A DNA stretch of 64,000 nucleotides from contig CBFDEM010000058.1 of NCBI GenBank assembly GCA_965603825.1, positions 434,001-498,000 on the forward strand, given 5' to 3'. Numbering within the stretch: the stretch's first letter is position 1; each line of letters begins with the position of its first letter. Shown in pieces: positions 7,147-18,502 of the stretch. The notes beneath the pieces are model-generated. The model saw only the letters and a program-made list of their open reading frames with translations. It ran no database searches and was not told the DNA's origin. This DNA is from Blepharisma stoltei ATCC 30299. Taxonomy: Eukaryota; Protista; Ciliophora. Made by a program: the position numbers and the translations under genes.

Positions 7147-9822
7147 ATGATAAATACAAAGAAAGCAGCCTGTCTACCGCTCATCAGCAGATCTGCAAGG
7201 CCTAAGTCAAAATCGTCAAACATTTCTTTGGCATCAAGTCCTACTTCCCCAGACATTGATATTCACCTTTTCGAAAGAAAAGAAAAAATTAGGCAAATCC
7301 ACACAAGCCAAAACAAATTTTCAAGATATGTCGGCTCAATGAGCAGCAAAGACTCAGATTCCAACTCAAGCGGAAGTCCAGATAATGCTTCTGCTAAGCT
7401 CAACTTCTTTGAGTCTTATAAGAAAATAGGAAAAGAGACTGAAAGAGTCGAGTTCAGAAAAATGAAACAGTCGCCAGAAATTGCATTTCTCAAAGAAATT
7501 GATAAAGGAGGTTTAAGTCCTAAACCTTTTGGGCTCATCAAGTCTGGCACACCACAGTCAAGAAGCTCTAAATCAAGAAGCCCACAGTCAAAAAGTCCTC
7601 AGTCAAAAGGCTCCGTTGTTGGGTCATTCGATTTAAGAAATATCGGAATGGGAGATACTTATGCAAAGGCATTTTCGAAAGGAATTAAGCATATTCCACA
7701 GGTAGAAGAGCTAAATTTAAAAGAAAATCGACTCAGTGAGAAAGGTGCTTTGAAAATTTTGTCAAAGTTAGTAGAAAAGAAAACAAAATACCTTGTTTTG
7801 ACTGGGAATCATTTAGGTGAGCAGTCAGTACAAAAAATCGTTGAAATTTTAGATAACCCAAAATCTTATCTGAAGCACCTAAGCCTAGAAAACACAAAAC
7901 TAAGCGAATCCGCTATTATTCAGCTTTGTAACAGCTTAAAAGAAAATACTACCCTGACCAGATTGAATTTGGCGAAAAATGAAATCAGAAATGGAGCTGT
8001 CAAAGCCATAGGTGAGATGCTCTCTAAAAATTACGGCCTAAGATATTTAGATCTTCACTGGAACTTAATCAGAGGCGACGAAGCAATCTATTTATTCAAT
8101 GGCCTAGAGCAAAACCGATACCTAAGACACTTAGACTTGTCATGAAATGCAATTGGCAACTCCACTAACCTAGAAATCATCAATTCCATTGGTAAAGCTT
8201 TCAAAGAAAACACACTCCTAATCCATGCAGATTTATCATATAACAATTTTAATCTCCAAGAATGCGAAATCCTTGGAAAATTTTTATATGATAATCACAC
8301 ACTTATAGGTCTACACATGCTTGGAAATGATTGTAAAATCAATTCCAAAGGCTTTATTATTCCAATGAAATGCAGAAAGGAAAAAGACGCCCACAACTTC
8401 CAGAGAGTCATTAATGAACCTACTTTTATGATTCATAATGAAGAAAGCTCGAACTGCTGGATCTGTGAAAGGTGGGTCGAGGCAGAATTTACTGTAAAAT
8501 CAGAAAAAGCTGCTTTTCTGCACTTAGAATGCGATGGATTTGCAGGAGAACTAATGGAAAACAATAATAATGGGACTTTTTATATAAAAAGAGTGGTACC
8601 CCCTGGAGTTTTGAAGTTCTTCTATAGCAATGAAAATGGTGTAATTGCACTAGAAGATACCCCTAGTGAGCCTTATGACAAACCTATAGAAGTTATTATA
8701 GGTGCTAATAAAAAGGTCTTAGAAACTGTCAATGTAAGCTATGCAGAAGGAATTGTATGTGACCCTAGAAATCTTTTTGAAACACAAATTAGGATCCCTG
8801 GGACAACTTATACGATTAGTAAGCCCCCTCCAGCAGAGCCTGAAGAAATCATATATGAAAGGATCATATGGGATATCTCTATTAGTTCCTTTAAAGACTA
8901 CAAATTTGATACAGAGCAAAGACTTCAAGCTAATTTTGAGACAGATTTTAAGCATTCTAGGATAAATAAATTTGTTAAGGATCCACTTGATGTAATGAAC
9001 TCTAAAGAGTGTTTGGAAAAGGTTTATCATCAGTTTAAAGAAACCTATAGGCATTTAGCAGCATTGGGTGGGAATGATTTGTTCTGCTTTGGCTCTAATA
9101 TTTTTTCTGATTTTCTAACACAATGCAATGTGTTTGATGAAAATTTCGGAATAAATGATCTCGGTATCTGCTGGAATGCGACCAAATGCCAGAGGTCGAA
9201 ATGTGAAGCTGTGATAGGAAACAGACTTTCTAAGCATGAATTCATGGAAATTATTGCTAGGATAGCAAATGATAAATACGTCAGAAACAATCTATGCAAA
9301 AATACAGCTGAAGCTTTGCAGAGATTATTTGATGAGAGCTTGATTCCTATTATGTCTCAATTTGATACAAATAGATGGAGAATGGAGAAATACTGCTGTG
9401 AAGAAGTTGACCTAGAGCTTAAAGTCTATAAGCCAATTTTTGATGAAATATTTAGACTTTACACAGGGAAAATCTTTTGCCAGTCAAAAGGATTCATGTC
9501 ATTAGACGAATTCAGAAATCTGTGTATTGAGTCTGGACTATTGAATGACTCAAGAGAAATTGATTTTTGTGCTTATAAGGCAATTATGTGCCATAAAGAA
9601 GAGATTCTTGAGAAAAAACATGTGAAACTCAGCTATGTAGAATTTTTAGAAGCAATTTGTAGAGTTTTCGATCAGTGTGGGAATAAAAACGAGAAATTAA
9701 GAGACAAGGTTCGAGCAGGGGTTACTCAGCTTATCAATTTGTGCTCTGATGCTATAAAAGGATCATTTACTATACCAACAGATGAGGCCTATTTTAAACT
9801 TATGTATCGGCCTAAACTTTAA
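7147..9822 (+). CDS. RI-type (NLRC3-like) LRR protein with central beta-domain and C-terminal EF-hand-like helical region, 891 aa
   Basis: 7147-8145 and 8317-9822 join in frame through TGA in 'LDLS-W-NAIG', matching the preceding repeat 'LDLHWNLI'. Confidence 0.85.
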
Positions 9823-9926: not shown

Positions 9927-11237
9927 CTATAATTTAAATAGCGATGTATGTAAGGCAAATAGCACTTCTTTATCAATTGCTTTTAGCTGCTTATAGACAG
10001 TCTTTCTTACTGCTACTGCATAAGTAAATATTGTCTTCTCTACATCACTCTTAAAAAAGTTTGATGCTTTATAAACTTCAGCTAAAGGCCATCTATTTCC
10101 TCCATACACAACTTGGCAAATATAAGACCTATAAATCAAAAGAGAATTTGCAAAATCATGCTGAGTTTCTCCATCGAAAGGTAGCATCTGGAAGAAAGGT
10201 CTCAAATTTTTATTGCTAACTTCAGTGCGTTCCCAAGCTCCATAATTCCCTCTGATATTCCTTAGTAAATTTACATTGATTTCTACCGCATTTAATTGGA
10301 ATTTGCAGGATCCATCAGATAAAATTTTTTCATAACAAATTTCATAGGTGATGCTTACTGTAAAACTATCATCATGATTGTTAGGAATCGTAAACCCATA
10401 CATAGATAGCAAATCTATATTTGGTAGTTGCTTATATTCATACACAAGCTCATTCCCTCTATTTAAAGTTCTATCTGCGATTAATGTAAATCCTGGTGGC
10501 ATTTTGTCATCAAATACAATTGAAGAAGTTTTCATGGTCGAGTTTAGAGGTCTTGGCCAATGATTGATAAAATCAATTCCAGGGATTAACACAGGATAAT
10601 TATACTTTTCATCGAGATCTTTAAAGCCATACATTCTCATCATTTCTGAAGCTGGGTATAATATAGCTCGCGTTTGGATAACAGCATCTGCCCATAAAAA
10701 TGCTTGATAATTGAACATCTCAGCTGGCAAGTCGTAGCGGTTTTTAATTTTCGATAAAACAAGCTCATGGTCAGCTGTAATATTCCTTATAAAATAGGAT
10801 CTTGTATAGTCATAAATCCCTAATTTTTCAAACACATCAAATTCGGCATCACTTCATAATAAAGGTGTTGTGTACTTTAGAGGGAAATTGTGCACAAACT
10901 CCGTGAGAAATGGCCCTCTAGGTGCTATAAATTTTTCATAGAGAATTCTCATACGAAGCATTGAGTAAGGGGAAATACCTTTTAGGACTGATGTTAAAGG
11001 GAAAGGAGTGACTGGCTCGAGAGTGTCAGCTAAAGGAATTTTAAAGAGAACTTCCCCTTCTTTGATGTTAGATAAAAGCTTTATTCCTATACCTCGGCCT
11101 TCAAAATAAGCTATTCCATGACTATTGATGTGGGACCGAAGTTGACAGCTGAAAGAGCTTGCTTGATCCCTTGTCGTTGTGAGTGGAACTTCATATGCGT
11201 GTGCAACAATAAGAAACGAAATAAAATATAGCATCAT
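9927..11237 (-). CDS. SET-domain methyltransferase (Rubisco-LSMT/SETD3-SETD4 class) with predicted signal peptide, 436 aa
   Basis: GRGIG, PGIDFINH and 'ELVYEY...NIDLLSMYGF' motifs; TGA at 10854-10856; N-terminus MMLYFISFLIVAHA|YE. Confidence 0.8.
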
Positions 11238-11810: not shown

Positions 11811-12875
11811 ATGGAATCATCAATTTTTGAGGTTGATGGGTCTTTATATGAAGGGGGTGGCCAAATAATGAGAGTCGCTTTATGTTTAGGGATTATTAAA
11901 CAAATTCCAGTCACAATCAAAAATATTCGTGCTGGCCGTGATAGGCCTGGTCTTGCCCGAAGCCATCTTGCTTCAGTTCTGATCTTACAGCAAATCTGCA
12001 ACGGTCGCTTAGAAAACGCAGAGCTTGGGTCGACTACATTAACATTATACCCTAGCCAAATCTCTTCAGGGACTTTTATAGCTGATTGTGGCTCTTCAGG
12101 AAGCATAACCCTTATGCTCCAAGCAATCCTTCCTGTATTAATAAAAACTTCTTCAATATTGATTTTACGTGTACTTTTAATTTAGGGCGGCACTGATGTC
12201 CCGTTTTCTCCAACGACACATTTTATTCAAAATTCTCTGCAGCCATTTCTAAATAAAATCGGGGTAAAATTCAGCTATGAAGTAAAAAGGTATGGATTTA
12301 ACCCTATAGGAAGAGGAGAAGTAGAAGTTCGTACTGAGCTTTGTGAGGAAATTAATGGAATTGATATTTTATATAATAAAATTTCAAGAAATATTGAAGC
12401 AGAAATAGTATATAGCAGAAAAAGCAAAGGAAATATGAACTATGATGAAGAAATAAGGAAAGTTGTTGAGAGAGTTGGTAAGAGATATACAGTAAATGAG
12501 CTAGAAGTTAATAGAGAAATAATAAGTGTAAGAGAAGTCGATGCGGAATGCCATGGGGTAGTGGTAAATGTATGAAATAAAAGCGAAAATGGATGCTTTT
12601 ACCACAAATCTGAGGTTGGAATTTTTAAAGGAAAAAATGAATGGGAGAAACCATGTAGAGATCTGAAAAATTGCATAGAATCGGAAGCTTGCATCTGTGA
12701 AGAGTTGCAGGACCAGCTTTTAATATTTTTAGCAATGGCAAGTAGCCCTTCGAGAATAAAAATTAATCAGGCTACTGATCATTCTTTAGCTGTAATTGAG
12801 TTAATAAACAGGGTTGGCTTGGCAAGAATTTCAATGAATGAAGGGATTTTGGAAATAATTCCGCAGTCTAGGTAA
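11811..12875 (+). CDS. RTCA: RNA 3'-terminal phosphate cyclase
   Basis: DGS..EGGGQI.R, IRAGR.RPGL..H and GSITLMLQ motifs; 15-nt intron 12171-12185 then GGTDVPFSP; YGFNPIGRGEV; DQL and TDH (adenylated His position); TAA 12873-12875. The 3' half is missing from the ORF track. Confidence 0.92.
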
Positions 12876-12997: not shown

Positions 12998-13069
12998 AGC
13001 GAAGTGGCGCAGTGGAAGCGTGCTGGGCTCATAACCCAGAGGTCGATGGATCGAAACCATTCTTCGCTA
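12998..13069 (+). tRNA. initiator tRNA-Met (CAT)
   Basis: AGCGAAG/CTTCGCT acceptor stem with A1:U72, CTGGG-ctCATaa-CCCAG anticodon arm, eukaryotic initiator T-loop GATCGAAA, downstream T-run. Confidence 0.97.
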
Positions 13070-13070
13070 C

Positions 13071-13076: not shown

Positions 13077-13388
13077 TTGTTTTTGCTTTTTTAAAAATGA
13101 AAATGCTTTAATAAGCTAATGAATAGAGAAGCAGGCTTTGTTTTTGGATTACTAGAATTATTTGATAGAAAATTGTTAGTGAGAAGGCATAGTAAATTTT
13201 AATATAACATTGAGTTAAATTGATCGCAAGCAATATTTTTTCTCAAATCATCTTAGAAGTAGTTAAAGGACTGAGAAGGCAAATATCTGCATATAGCGCT
13301 ATGTGCTTTATAGCTTTTTTAGTTATATTACCTAATCAGCCCTGACCATTTTCTCAAAAGTATGGACTCAATCAGATAATAATAGGAC

Positions 13389-14987
13389 ATGGACTATTTT
13401 CAAAGAACTCCAAATGCTGTGATTTGCATTATTTTTTCCTATTTAAATTCCACAGAAGTCGCAAGACTCGCTTCGCTAAACAAATTATTTTACGAATGCA
13501 CCAGCGAATGCCTATACAACATCTTCACACAAATGGGATGGGGCAATCCAAAAATTTCAGAAGCAATTCAAGCATTTGGACAGATTTACAGTAAGCAAGT
13601 GATCGTTTATAAAGACTGGGACTCAGATCTTATCCAGCAAGTCCAATTCCCAGGGCTAAGAAGTGTTAAGGAAATCAAATTTGGGAACCTCCATACCGCG
13701 ATTCTAAAGCATGATGGAGTCGTTCTGTCAGATCTAGGAAAAAATGAAGTCACTCCCTGCATGTACAACATAAAGCAAATCGAATGCAACATGGATAGAA
13801 TTATTGGCCTTACTGAATTCAATAAAATAGAATGCTTGTCAGTCATAGGCGGGCAGCTCATAAAATCCAATTGGGAAGGTGAAGGAAAAATCACCGCGAT
13901 CGCTGTTGGAGCTTCGTTTTTTGTAGGAACTGAAGAAGGAAGAGTTTTTGCGTTCAGCGAAACCCTTTCAGCAGAAGTCAACTTTGCGACGCCTAACACA
14001 GCTGCAATTAAAGACTTAAAAGCCACTCCAAAGGTTCTGCTTATTTTAACAGTCACAGGCAAGCTTTATCAATGTGAACTTTTCAATTTTACAGCTACAC
14101 AGCTATTCCCTACAAAATTCATTGCATTGATAGCACTTGGCTATTCACACTCTATTGCTCTAGCTAGAGAAGAATTCCCACCGCTGAAAGATTGAAATTC
14201 TCAGTTTCTGTGTGAATGGATGCAAAAAGTCGGCTTTGAAGACTGCTGCAGACTAATCACAAACCATCAAATAGCAGGAAGTGAACTAGATAATATGGAT
14301 GAAAATTATCTTTTTGAGACTTTAGGGATTAAAGAAGCAAATAGAAGAAACAAATTAAATCTGGAACTCAGTAGAGTTAAAAACTCAAGTGTTTCTATTA
14401 GCTGTGAACTATATGGCTGGGGCAAAAATTTAGAAATGCAAATTTGTACAGATACAAATATAGTGAAAAAGCCAGTGAAAATGAATTTACCTGAGTTTTA
14501 CGCTGAAGAAACTATTAAAGCAATTCATTGCAATAAATTTTTTACATTTTTATTTACAAGTTTTGGAAGGATTTTTGTAAAAGGAGGAGTGCCTTTCCGA
14601 AAGCTCACAAAAGACGAAAAAAAGAATTTTGTGCACTGGAGAACAATAGAAGACAAATTTTCTCAAAATTCCAATTGCAATATTTTATCAATATCAACCT
14701 CTACATATCAAATAGGAATCATATATAAAAATTTTTCAAAGAAAACTAGAGAAAAAACAAGAATGAGCATGGGTGATGACGTATTGAATGAAATCTTGAA
14801 AAATCCAAGATGGAATCCATCAGAGTTTGTGATAGGGTATACTGACAGATTTTTAGGCATTTTAGAACTTTCCGCAATTGAATTTAGTCAAAGCGAAATT
14901 ATTAAGCATAGGATCCAATACTTCAAAAGAAATGGAGAAATTGTTTGGGATCGACGCACGAGATTAGATCTAATGAAAATAAATTAA
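13389..14987 (+). CDS. F-box + RCC1-like repeats + SAM + C-terminal MJ1316 (LENG9/DUF504-type) domain protein, 532 aa
   Basis: F-box (TPNAVICIIFSYL..EVARLASLNK); RCC1-like GNLHTAIL, GYSHSIAL, LYGWGKN; SAM starting at TGA 14193 (W-NSQFLCEWMQKVG...HQIAG..L...LGI....R.KL); MJ1316 (FVIGYTDRFLGILE...HRIQYFKRNGEIVWDRRTRLD). Confidence 0.85.
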
Positions 14988-15001
14988 AAATAAATAAAAA
15001 T

Positions 15002-16687
15002 ATGTTCAATGAAGCATATGATTTAAAAGCTGACCTGAACATATGCATGCAAACATTAAATTCAGAAAAATTTAGAGAGCTTTTAAATTTAGCAAGAATT
15101 GATTTATATAAACTGACTGACCATTTAGGGTTTAATATTTTCCACGATATCGCATCTTGTATAATAAAAGAAGAAAAACTTGCTGAATATTTAGAAATCT
15201 TAAAAAAAGCCTTTGTAGAGAGATATCCTGATGACTGGCAAACAATGATTCTCCCAATGCTGAACTCTCAGGCTGTTCATGATAGAAATTCTCCTCTGCA
15301 CTGTGCAATCCTAAATAACAGAAAAGTAAAAAATATATAGAAAATCATTGAAGAATTCATTAAATTAGGATCAAACTTTAGACTGAAAAACGTTCACGGA
15401 CAAAATGTAATGCATTTATCTGTAATTGCTGGAAATATACAACTATTAGCCTATTTCAAATACAAACACGGAATGCCTATCAATGAGCTTGATAATGATG
15501 GAAAGAGCCTTCTTCATCTCGCAATTTCGAATAATAATGAATATATTTTATCGCTACTACTAACATGGATAGACGATTTAGAGATAAAAGATAAAGAAGG
15601 CCGAACACCTTTACATGCCGCTGTGCTTTCTAGGGAATACTATTTAGTTAGAAGTCTCCTTGTTGCTGGAGCTAAAAGGAAAGCTAGAGATAACAGCGGC
15701 GTTACTCCCCTAGATTTAGCAATTCAAAATGGCGCTTTCGAGTTGATAAGGATGCTGGTAATTTAGATTTAGAAAGAACCATTAGTGATCTGCAAGCTTA
15801 ATCCTTGCCAGTCTCCATTGAAGCCTATGGAGAAGACTTTTAGTGCTTATATTTTGTATATTTTTATATTCGTATCAAGGTATGGCTTGGTGTTTTATTT
15901 TATGCTCCCTCACTATCCTGTGCATGTTATTATTATTTCTTGCATTATTTTTATTATGTCATTTTTATCTTTTTTTTTAGTCAGTTGTATGAATCCTGGA
16001 TATCTATATCAAAAGCCAGATCAAGATTTACTTGTAAGTTTAATATAGACTCTATATGAAAAAATACATCCAGAGTTTTTATGTCCGAAGTGTATAGTTA
16101 AGCGAACTAGAACTACTAAGCATTGCCAGCACTGTGGTAGATGTGTTGATCGATATGATCATCATTGTCCATGAATTCGTAATTGTGTAGGAAGAAAAAA
16201 CTATAGAGTTTTTATCTGATTTATCACTATTTGCTTGATTGACTTCACATATCATATCGTTATAAGTCTCCTCGAATTTTTCAAAGTCTTCCATAGCGAA
16301 TTTAAAAGTTTTGAGTCCAATTCAGAATTCCATAGTGCTGCGACCTTGATGATTTGTATTATAAATTTTATTTGCATGCTATTTATTATTCCAGTAGTTT
16401 ATATCCAATATACAAATATTTTAAGAAAGACGACTACACATGAAAGGTTTGCATATCATAAGGAAAACAGGTCGACATTTATAAGTATTGATATTACAAA
16501 TATGCCATCTGCAAGTGAAACAACAGAAAGGGCGTCAATAGCAATGAAAGAAGCCAATGAATTTGAAAATTTCCAAAAAATGCGTAAAGATTCAAAAATT
16601 TCATGCTGGAAAAGATTCAAAAAAAGAAAATCAAGCAACTTAAGTCTCTCAACTGTCATAGAAAAATCCCTTATTAATGATATGTAA
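15002..16687 (+). CDS. ankyrin-repeat DHHC palmitoyltransferase (ZDHHC13/17/Akr1-like)
   Basis: Ankyrin repeats; 15-nt introns 15326-15340, 15758-15772 and 16034-16048; CxxC..KHCQHCGRCVDRYDHHCP-W(TGA 16172)-IRNCVG; TTxE motif (TTHE). Confidence 0.92.
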
Positions 16688-17254: not shown

Positions 17255-18502
17255 ATGAAGGCCATCTTAATTTGTTGTCTTTTGATTCTAGTGGCCAGCC
17301 ACGAAAGTGATTACCAAAACCTACTTTATGGAATTTTGCAAGGATCAGAACTTATCACTCCTATTACTCCTCTAAATTGTAAAACATTAATATCCCGTTT
17401 CCAAAAACCTTATTTATTTGACAGGCCTTGAAAAAAGGTGATTTCTGATACAAGCGTGCTTTCAGAAACTTGCGGATTTAATGCTGCTTATGAGACTTTG
17501 CAAGGCTTTATGCAATTTCCTCAAATTTTTGAAAAATTCCTTATAAAACTTGATGATTCTATTGAAAATGATAGACTTTTCCCTGAAAGCAACCTACAAA
17601 AATACGGGATATCAGTAGGAATGATTATGAAGCCCTTTTTGGCTTTGGTTATACCTACTGTGCTGGACTTTGAGTTTTCTAACAAATTTATGTCCTTGAA
17701 ATCAGGAAAGCATCCTATAGCGATTTTTCATGGCCTAGGTGATAGCTGTTATTACTCGGGAAATATTGAATTTACAGAATACATTCGCAAAAACGTTGGA
17801 ACCTATACAAAATGCGTTGAAATTGGAGATGGGTCTAACAGCAGCTGGCTTGAGCCTTTCCAATCGCAAGCAATTCAAGCATGCGAAAGAATTAAAGAAG
17901 AAACAGAATATTCTAATGGACTTAGCATTATTGGCTTATCTCAAGGTGGATTAATTGCAAGATATATTGCAGAAGCATGTGGAGTTCCAGTTCATGTAAT
18001 TGTAACAATAGGAACACCTCATATGGGAGTAGCAACCATGCCCTATTGTTTAAATGGATTTTACTGTGATGTCATAAATGATGTCACTAGTAAAGATGCC
18101 TATGGTCTTTTTAGTCAAAGTAATATAGGGCCTCCTGGGTACTTTAATGACCCAAATAATTACGAAAGCTATTTAGAAAATAGCAGTTTCTTAGCTGATT
18201 TGAATAATGAGAAATTTATCAATACCACTTTTATAGAGAAAATGCAAAGCCTGAACCATTTAGTTCTCATTAAATTTACAGAGGATTCTGCAATTTCTCC
18301 AATAGAAAGTGCATGGTTTGGGTACTTTGAAGGGGGAAATGTCGTCCCCTTTAATCAAACTAAAAGCTATTTAAAAAACACACTTGGACTACAGCAACTT
18401 TATTCCGAAAATAAGCTTCATTTTATTGAGATCGAAGGTGAGCATTTAAATTTCAATGAAGAAGAGTTTACGGAACTGATTTTACCTTATCTTTTGGATT
18501 AA
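17255..18502 (+). CDS. PPT1: palmitoyl-protein thioesterase 1-like, with signal peptide and an extra N-terminal domain, 415 aa
   Basis: ATG 17255 (MKAILICCLLILVA) in frame via one TGA; HGLGDSC, GLSQGG (Ser), EDSAISP (Asp), GEHL (His). Confidence 0.88.

Follow-up and report, generated by a model that had tools for sequence, protein, structure and literature searches.

A single gene with a reassigned TGA codon

The window analyzed here, a stretch of 64,000 nucleotides from the heterotrich ciliate Blepharisma stoltei ATCC 30299 (contig CBFDEM010000058.1, positions 434,001 to 498,000; all coordinates given below without a locus name are those of the window), contains on its forward strand, at 13389..14987, a macronuclear gene whose product combines an F-box, RCC1-like repeats, a SAM domain and an MJ1316 domain. 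The gene is intronless, consists of 532 codons followed by a TAA stop, and encodes a protein of ~61 kDa with a whole-protein isoelectric point (pI) of 8.4. Among the 533 codons of the frame, only two are stop-like, namely the terminal TAA and a TGA at codon 269 (14193-14195). The start of the gene is fixed by a TAG that lies in frame two codons upstream of the ATG.

The somatic genome of B. stoltei ATCC 30299 (41 Mbp in 64 telomere-to-telomere contigs, 66% AT) has introns of 15 and 16 bp and reads the reassigned UGA codon as Trp (PMC9942806). The GC content of the window is ~32%, and most of the long frames in it that are bounded only by TAA or TAG hold in-frame TGAs. Obvious 15-nt introns are present in a neighboring gene, e.g. 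at 15326-15340. Inside the gene at 13389-14987, no 15-nt GTA...AG intron motif was found, and the two GTA...TAG strings that it does contain, of 18 and 20 nt, are both located within conserved coding sequence. Removal of the TGA by an intron was considered as well and is ruled out, given that there is no GT...AG segment of 15-16 nt nearby.

The TGA codon specifies Trp269, a conserved residue that opens the SAM domain. For the Pfam and homology searches, the two pieces that flank the TGA were run separately, with natural orthologues serving as full-length stand-ins, and the TGA was taken as Trp in the calculations of pI and of the ratio of nonsynonymous to synonymous substitutions (dN/dS). In the alignment of both pieces with 13 relatives, a single column separates the end of the first piece from the start of the second one, and this column is occupied by Trp in all relatives (13/13). 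The respective Trp of the orthologue P0004, residue 267, occupies position 4 of the SAM_2 model in the Pfam alignment. In the B. stoltei protein, the SAM_2 match begins two residues after the equivalent of this Trp, and the offsets of the Pfam match place the TGA at the same position 4. The congeneric orthologue (locus L017) has TGG at the codon that corresponds to the TGA and, conversely, TGA at its codon 480, where the B. stoltei gene has TGG (codon 475). The orthologues from organisms with the standard code are single, unbroken open reading frames. The Trp column and the exchange of TGA and TGG between the congeners back the original prediction, made from the sequence letters, that reading TGA 14193 as Trp yields a single 532-aa protein. 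The existence at this locus of one gene with the F-box/RCC1-like/SAM/MJ1316 architecture can be considered virtually certain.

Domain architecture of the protein

At the N-terminus of the protein lies an F-box, followed by an RCC1-like propeller, one blade of which accommodates an inserted SAM domain; a basic linker then leads to an MJ1316 domain at the C-terminus. The four domains, their order and the read-through of the TGA are real, well beyond chance; Pfam searches with the two pieces and with the orthologues gave the same list of domains in the same order as had been read from the sequence. The NCBIfam scan of both pieces produced zero matches.

The F-box encompasses three helices (13398..13532, aa 4-48, with the Pfam match at aa 8-43, 13410-13517) and is joined to the propeller by a helical linker (13533..13592, aa 49-68). 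The F-box-like family (PF12937) matches aa 8-43 with E 1e-3 in the search with the whole piece and with 22.0 bits (cut-off 24.3) in the search with the first 80 aa, and the F-box family (PF00646) matches aa 8-39 with 18.8 bits (cut-off 20.5). Both cut-offs are exceeded by the orthologue P0004 (30.8 bits for F-box-like and 23.6 bits for F-box); the N-terminus of a metagenomic orthologue (locus L004) scores 20.9 bits against the cut-off of 20.5; and 6 members of the family match the F-box at E<=0.01. When a profile of the first ~80 residues of the family was compared with all solved chains, it retrieved nearly exclusively F-box proteins (FBXL5, Skp2, Cdc4, KDM2A/B, FBXO42, Fbw7, FBXO3 and TIR1), aligned at their F-boxes. 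The N-terminus of P0004 in the AlphaFold2 model of this orthologue, which was built on the family alignment (predicted local distance difference test score [pLDDT] 84.3, predicted template modeling score [pTM] 0.70), consists of helices 9-17, 21-28 and 32-48, followed by the linker helix 56-67 and then by the propeller.

The B. stoltei genome contains at least 11 Skp1 genes and yields at least 47 F-box-like matches. Four of the Skp1 genes are clustered on contig C19 (75501-88827; loci L005, L007 and L008), including a tandem pair that encodes proteins of 161 and 165 aa. The most canonical copy (L006:1492-1974:-, 161 aa, intronless) was chosen for complex prediction together with aa 1-80 of the F-box protein. 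The predicted complex has an interface score (ipSAE) of 0.92 in 3/3 runs, compared to 0.01 for the best of three controls; the mark set for this score is attained by 51 of 78 solved complexes and by 2 of 108 mismatched pairs. The runs share at least 96% of the contacts, with a partner pLDDT of at least 82, and the predicted interface is canonical: residues 95-160 of Skp1, which form its C-terminal helices, face aa 1-38 of the F-box protein, and aa 60-68 contact Skp1 as well. Taken with the orthologue scores and the N-terminal profile, this model strongly supports the assignment of the N-terminal domain to the type of F-box that engages Skp1 at its C-terminal helices. The claim that the F-box is real and recruits Skp1, for which structure prediction with Skp1 had been suggested as a check, is thus supported, with respect to Skp1 as an in silico prediction.

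The RCC1-like propeller (PF25390/PF00415) is divided into an N-terminal part of about four and a half blades (13593..14174, aa 69-262) and a C-terminal part (14385..14726, aa 333-446), with the SAM domain (PF07647/PF00536; 14184..14384, aa 266-332) lying within a blade. In the B. stoltei sequence itself, the RCC1-like signal is weak, with Pfam E values of 6e-5 and 8e-4 on the two sides of the TGA that do not reach the cut-off; the matches to the N-terminal part are WD40_RLD (E 6e-5) and RCC1_2 (E 5e-4). P0004 scores above the RCC1 cut-offs (RCC1, 32.8 bits; RCC1_2, 31.0 bits), a profile of the C-terminal part of the propeller matches hundreds of multi-repeat RCC1 proteins, and the profile search against the PDB retrieved the solved RCC1-like domain of HERC1 with E 2e-24. 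The propeller in the P0004 model comprises 26 strands, 19 of them in the region 70-260 and seven in 333-446, and the four helices of the SAM domain (269-330) are located between strands 252-260 and 333-344, two strands on each side. Seven blades with the SAM domain inside one of them is how this strand list is best read, as opposed to a count on the coordinates. A Foldseek search with the same model retrieved the RCC1-like propellers of RPGR, RCC1, WBSCR16, UVR8 and HERC2 (E 2e-15 to 1e-10). The SAM domain is recognized directly downstream of the TGA by SAM_2 with 33.3 bits (cut-off 20.5; 39.1 bits in P0004), and its closest solved relatives by profile are the SAM domains of SARM1 and liprin-beta.

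The propeller is followed by a Lys/Arg-rich linker (14727..14762, aa 447-458) and by the MJ1316 domain with a C-terminal tail (14763..14984; Pfam match at aa 459-522, 14763-14954), which in the P0004 model appear as a basic segment of low confidence and a small alpha/beta domain at 461-520, respectively. The N-terminal two thirds of the protein are acidic. The remaining third is basic, and the pI amounts to 9.1 in the last blades (the C-terminal part of the propeller), to 11.2 in the linker, and to 9.5 when the linker and MJ1316 are taken together. By composition, the basic C-terminal third would fit nucleic-acid binding.

The MJ1316 domain (PF04457, formerly DUF504/UPF0248; ~75 aa) is conserved better than any other part of the protein; it scores 49.8 bits against the cut-off of 26.3 (62.6 bits in P0004) and is the sole match to this family in the 41-Mb genome. 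Its DRF..G..E, HRI and WD motifs are invariant across the family described here, the stand-alone MJ1316 proteins and an IMPACT-like fusion. The latter (P0145, 300 aa) consists of RWD, UPF0029 (IMPACT family) and MJ1316 and is a ribosome-tied protein, not an RNA enzyme. The model of the domain built from the B. stoltei sequence itself (pLDDT 89.7) superimposes on MJ1316 clusters of the ESM Atlas with template modeling (TM) scores of 0.79-0.86 and root mean square deviations (rmsd) of 1.6-2.0 A. Against solved structures, the best Foldseek match of this model has E 0.38, and the best VIA-align match, with Z 5.8, is a fructose-1,6-bisphosphatase from an archaeon, with small SH3-like barrels, SspB and WYL-domain proteins coming next at Z 2.3-3.7; these matches are within the noise, and therefore no fold is assigned to MJ1316.

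The combination of an F-box, RCC1-like repeats, SAM and MJ1316 had not been recognized when it was originally predicted and, in the literature searched, which left aside Burroughs and Aravind 2016, reportedly the comparative-genomics paper behind the MJ1316 name, no description of it was found.

A conserved ciliate family

The search of the B. stoltei genome for paralogues and domains (41,464,486 bases in 64 contigs) detected no paralogue, only the gene itself. The HMMER scan of 1.84 billion representative sequences, with a profile of the part of the protein that follows the SAM domain, retrieved collinear full-length relatives of 518-752 aa (P0003, P0004, P0011, P0041, P0086, P0121 and P0146) along with fragments, and the remainder of the list consists of ordinary multi-repeat RCC1 proteins. 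All the full-length relatives contain the F-box, propeller, SAM, propeller and MJ1316 in the same order. The exact sequence look-up of the first piece returned no record; the word search found nothing with this piece and P0004 alone with the full family alignment, and is uninformative on absence.

One of the relatives, P0121, comes from EukProt, where it represents a Trinity transcript of the armophorean Nyctotherus ovalis. Three relatives of the Nyctotherus type possess a Lys-rich insert of ~100 aa inside the C-terminal part of the propeller, upstream of the position of the Lys/Arg-rich linker. The largest relative, P0146 (752 aa), is encoded by the sole gene on a complete nanochromosome of 2,507 bp (L015 1-2507) that is capped by (C4A4)n/(G4T4)n telomeres at its two ends and accordingly provides independent proof that the architecture belongs to one gene. 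Another locus, L016, likewise ends in G4T4 repeats.

The metagenomic orthologue L004 (4788-6371, 26% GC) requires reading TGA as Trp twice and contains, between the F-box and the propeller, an in-frame TAA at a position where the relatives have ordinary residues. To judge by these codons, L004 looks like a case of a Condylostoma-like code with a sense TAA. The database protein derived from it, P0001, is cut at this TAA and has lost the F-box.

Both sides of the TGA are under purifying selection. The protein encoded by the congener is 61.8% identical to that of B. stoltei and, in five segments on either side of the TGA, the proportion of synonymous differences (pS) between the two genes is 0.71-0.92, i.e. 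saturated, and the proportion of nonsynonymous differences (pN) is 0.16-0.28 in each segment. Judging from sequence comparison, the architecture defines a conserved, single-copy family that is represented in several ciliate lineages and is not a one-off.

A putative SCF receptor and its possible link to RNA 3' ends

Given the Skp1-docking type of the F-box and the propeller that makes up the body of the protein, the family probably consists of substrate receptors of SCF (Skp1-Cul1-Rbx1) ubiquitin ligases, and we regard both Skp1 binding and the SCF role as likely. According to a review (PMC6514570), MJ1316 reads the 2'-3' cyclic ends of RNA, a statement for which the review refers to a comparative-genomics paper, and occurs in fusions with domains for RNA repair and ribosome rescue. 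The large ESM Atlas clusters that match the MJ1316 model by shape join this domain to PAP-type nucleotidyltransferases, to CCCH and AKAP7/2H domains (LENG9), and to an EEP phosphatase together with 2H or PAP, in agreement with the eukaryotic partners that had been named originally (2H phosphoesterase, as in LENG9, and nucleotidyltransferase domains); no F-box or RCC1 repeats were found in these clusters. MJ1316 rides on RNA 3'-end enzymes in the large clusters, and here it would most plausibly tether the ligase to RNA 3' ends or switch it on at such ends.

The mechanism that we favor, with guarded confidence, is that of an SCF receptor with an RCC1-like propeller and a SAM domain in which MJ1316 guides the ligase to RNA 3' ends. 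The F-box would dock on Skp1, which would make the protein the substrate receptor of an SCF ubiquitin ligase; MJ1316 would tether the ligase to RNA 3' ends, or switch it on there, probably at the 2',3'-cyclic phosphates left by metal-independent RNases; the propeller would present for ubiquitination proteins held on cleaved RNA, such as those of stalled ribosomes or ribonucleoprotein particles (RNPs); and self-association, on which many SCF receptors depend, may come from the SAM domain. By analogy with the enzyme fusions, recognition of RNA 3' ends by MJ1316 could be the guiding input, a proposition that we put forward tentatively. The original interpretation, an SCF substrate receptor that may be guided by damaged RNA ends, is supported in part. 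The most specific version of this scheme, in which ciliates would possess a dedicated cullin-RING receptor that reads RNA 3' 2',3'-cyclic phosphates or 2',3'-cyclic nucleoside monophosphates and turns cleavage into ubiquitination of the bound proteins (stalled ribosomes, RNPs of tRNA or rRNA fragments), is speculative and rather unlikely to hold in full.

Several considerations weigh against this interpretation. The two F-box scores of the B. stoltei protein itself fall slightly below the Pfam cut-offs, and the full-length model is that of the orthologue P0004, which is 41-48% identical to the two B. stoltei pieces. Because many complexes of Skp1 with F-box proteins have been solved, the success of the complex prediction may reflect memory of the family and indicates likeness rather than binding. 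With regard to MJ1316, the ligand is deduced from domain neighbors only, no experimental papers on any MJ1316 domain were found in the literature searched, and a sequence search detected no solved MJ1316 structure. Finally, four runs of one 2022 study contain 84-88% of the sampled words of 13200-15100, a stretch of which the gene makes up 84%, and it is a guess that these runs represent RNA.

The strongest of the alternatives, although itself unlikely, is that the propeller alone selects the substrate, which has been proposed for FBXO24, and MJ1316 is a regulatory sensor, of free 2',3'-cyclic nucleotides or of another nucleotide, or a module for protein contacts. F-box proteins with RCC1 repeats that lack MJ1316 do act as SCF receptors, as in the case of FBXO24 (PMC10932545), and the MJ1316 domain, which is small and has few invariant polar residues, would be equally suited to a small ligand and to an RNA end. 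However, all the large MJ1316 clusters that were found combine the domain with enzymes whose targets are the ends of polymeric RNA, and binding of a polymer is favored also by the Lys/Arg-rich linker that precedes MJ1316 and by the Lys-rich insert in the Nyctotherus-type propellers.

Less probable still is the possibility that the protein is a Skp1-binding scaffold outside of a cullin ligase, comparable to yeast Rcy1 or Ctf13, that would take part in an RNP or a trafficking complex without ubiquitination. The evidence extends to Skp1 and does not bear on Cul1, and the multiple Skp1 paralogues leave room for specialized complexes. Against this possibility, most F-box proteins are SCF receptors, and the interface predicted here is a canonical one, formed with the most canonical copy of Skp1.

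A further alternative involves the gene immediately upstream on the same strand (11811-12875), which encodes an RNA 3'-terminal phosphate cyclase (PF01137, E 4e-33) of the RtcA type (131 bits for TIGR03399, compared to 33.6 for Rcl1), with candidate 15-nt introns at 12171-12185 and 12478-12492; its exons were scanned one by one, not joined. The sole gene between it and the F-box gene is a tRNA-Met (CAT) at 12998-13070 on the forward strand. The adjacency is striking because the ends produced by RtcA are those proposed as the target of MJ1316, so that the three genes might form a co-regulated cyclic-end cluster in which RtcA produces the ligand of MJ1316, and a rough estimate puts the chance of a neighbor with related chemistry at the ~1% level. 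Nevertheless, tblastn searches and Pfam listings revealed zero RTC homologues in the fetched flanks of the orthologue loci L004, L011-L016, L018 and L019; the congener contig ends 156 nt upstream of the gene and hence is uninformative; and neighboring genes in eukaryotes are separate transcription units. A functional cluster is accordingly rejected as unsupported and its existence is quite improbable; the proximity of RtcA is unproven as a functional link and probably due to chance.

The weakest alternative, that the TGA is a genuine stop which separates two genes (a 268-aa protein with the F-box and half of the propeller, and a SAM/MJ1316 protein starting from the ATG at 14220) or marks a pseudogene, can draw on the interruption of the frame under the standard code and on the fact that standard-code gene callers cut the proteins of the congener and of the metagenomic orthologues likewise, but such a split would halve the SAM domain and a propeller blade, and it conflicts with the published code of this genome (PMC9942806) and is excluded, as far as sequence can do so, by the invariant Trp column, the codon swap between the congeners, the selection on both sides and the single-frame orthologues, which leaves it a negligible probability.

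Comparison with known systems and implications

Returning to the SCF receptor guided to RNA 3' ends, the proposed protein is built from known parts, an F-box/RCC1 receptor resembling FBXO24 and the MJ1316 RNA-end module. FBXO24 shares with it the N-terminal F-box followed by an RCC1-like propeller; the FBXO24 cluster ranked third in the ESM Atlas feature search, with a feature score of 0.87, below the level at which the tool reports more than a lead. FBXO24 has been described as part of an SCF ligase whose targets, among them MIWI and splicing factors, are RNA-related (PMC10932545), but it has neither the SAM insertion nor MJ1316, both of which the ciliate protein carries in addition. Orthology between the two is unlikely, considering that FBXO24 is a chordate family and the one described here is a ciliate family.

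LENG9 (CCCH, AKAP7/2H and MJ1316) has the C-terminal MJ1316 in common with the ciliate protein (TM 0.83-0.84 and rmsd 1.6-1.9 A to the model of the B. stoltei domain). In LENG9, however, this domain is joined to an RNA-end enzyme, the 2H cyclic phosphodiesterase, and to a zinc finger that binds RNA, whereas the ciliate domain belongs to an E3-ligase adaptor that lacks a catalytic RNA domain; neither of the two pieces gave a Pfam match to CCCH or 2H, so that MJ1316 is all that the two proteins share. The same fold of MJ1316 (TM 0.79-0.86) is found in fungal fusions with PAP-type nucleotidyltransferases and in Actinomycetota fusions with EEP and 2H or PAP, which are RNA repair or tailing enzymes without an F-box, an RCC1-like propeller or a SAM domain. 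In the receptors of the Fbw7/Cdc4 type, too, a helical linker connects an F-box to a beta-propeller on which the substrate is presented, and the longer Foldseek alignments place the whole P0004 model on Skp1-bound Fbw7 chains (E 9e-10). In contrast, their propellers are of the WD40 type and not RCC1-like, they dimerize through a D-domain, the role of which might be played here by SAM, and they lack an RNA-related domain.

A widespread domain for which the literature searched holds no biochemistry, with a proposed cyclic-phosphate role that rests on its fusion partners, and whose known partners in the large clusters are RNA-end enzymes, occurs here as the only copy in the genome and is part of a ubiquitin-ligase adaptor whose conservation spans ciliate classes. 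These observations are suggestive, although not proof, of a link between RNA cleavage and the ubiquitination of proteins. If real, this link would connect RNA damage to the ubiquitin system by a route that has not been described so far and would give MJ1316 its first assigned cellular role outside of RNA repair enzymes, and it would offer a simple system, with one 61-kDa protein and a predicted Skp1 partner, for studying how proteins bound to cleaved RNA are marked and what MJ1316 binds. In Stentor, RNA interference by feeding works. Should the RNA-end proposal fail, the family would still illustrate clearly how a blade of an RCC1-like propeller can accommodate an inserted domain. In addition, the locus exemplifies genes with UGA read as Trp that are split or shortened by standard-code gene callers, which has affected several database entries of this family.

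Other genes at the locus

Further upstream, two long open reading frames, of 501 aa (8317-9822, forward strand) and 302 aa (9927-10835, reverse strand), yield zero Pfam matches at E<=0.01. Downstream, on the same strand as the F-box gene, are located genes for an ankyrin-repeat protein with a weak match to the DHHC palmitoyltransferases (15002-16687; 15-nt introns at 15326-15340, 15758-15772 and 16034-16048) and for a palmitoyl-protein thioesterase (17438-18502; PF02089, E 1e-66). If the DHHC assignment holds, a writer and an eraser of S-palmitoylation are encoded side by side. The downstream order, with the ankyrin gene followed by the palmitoyl thioesterase gene, is retained at the congener locus L017.

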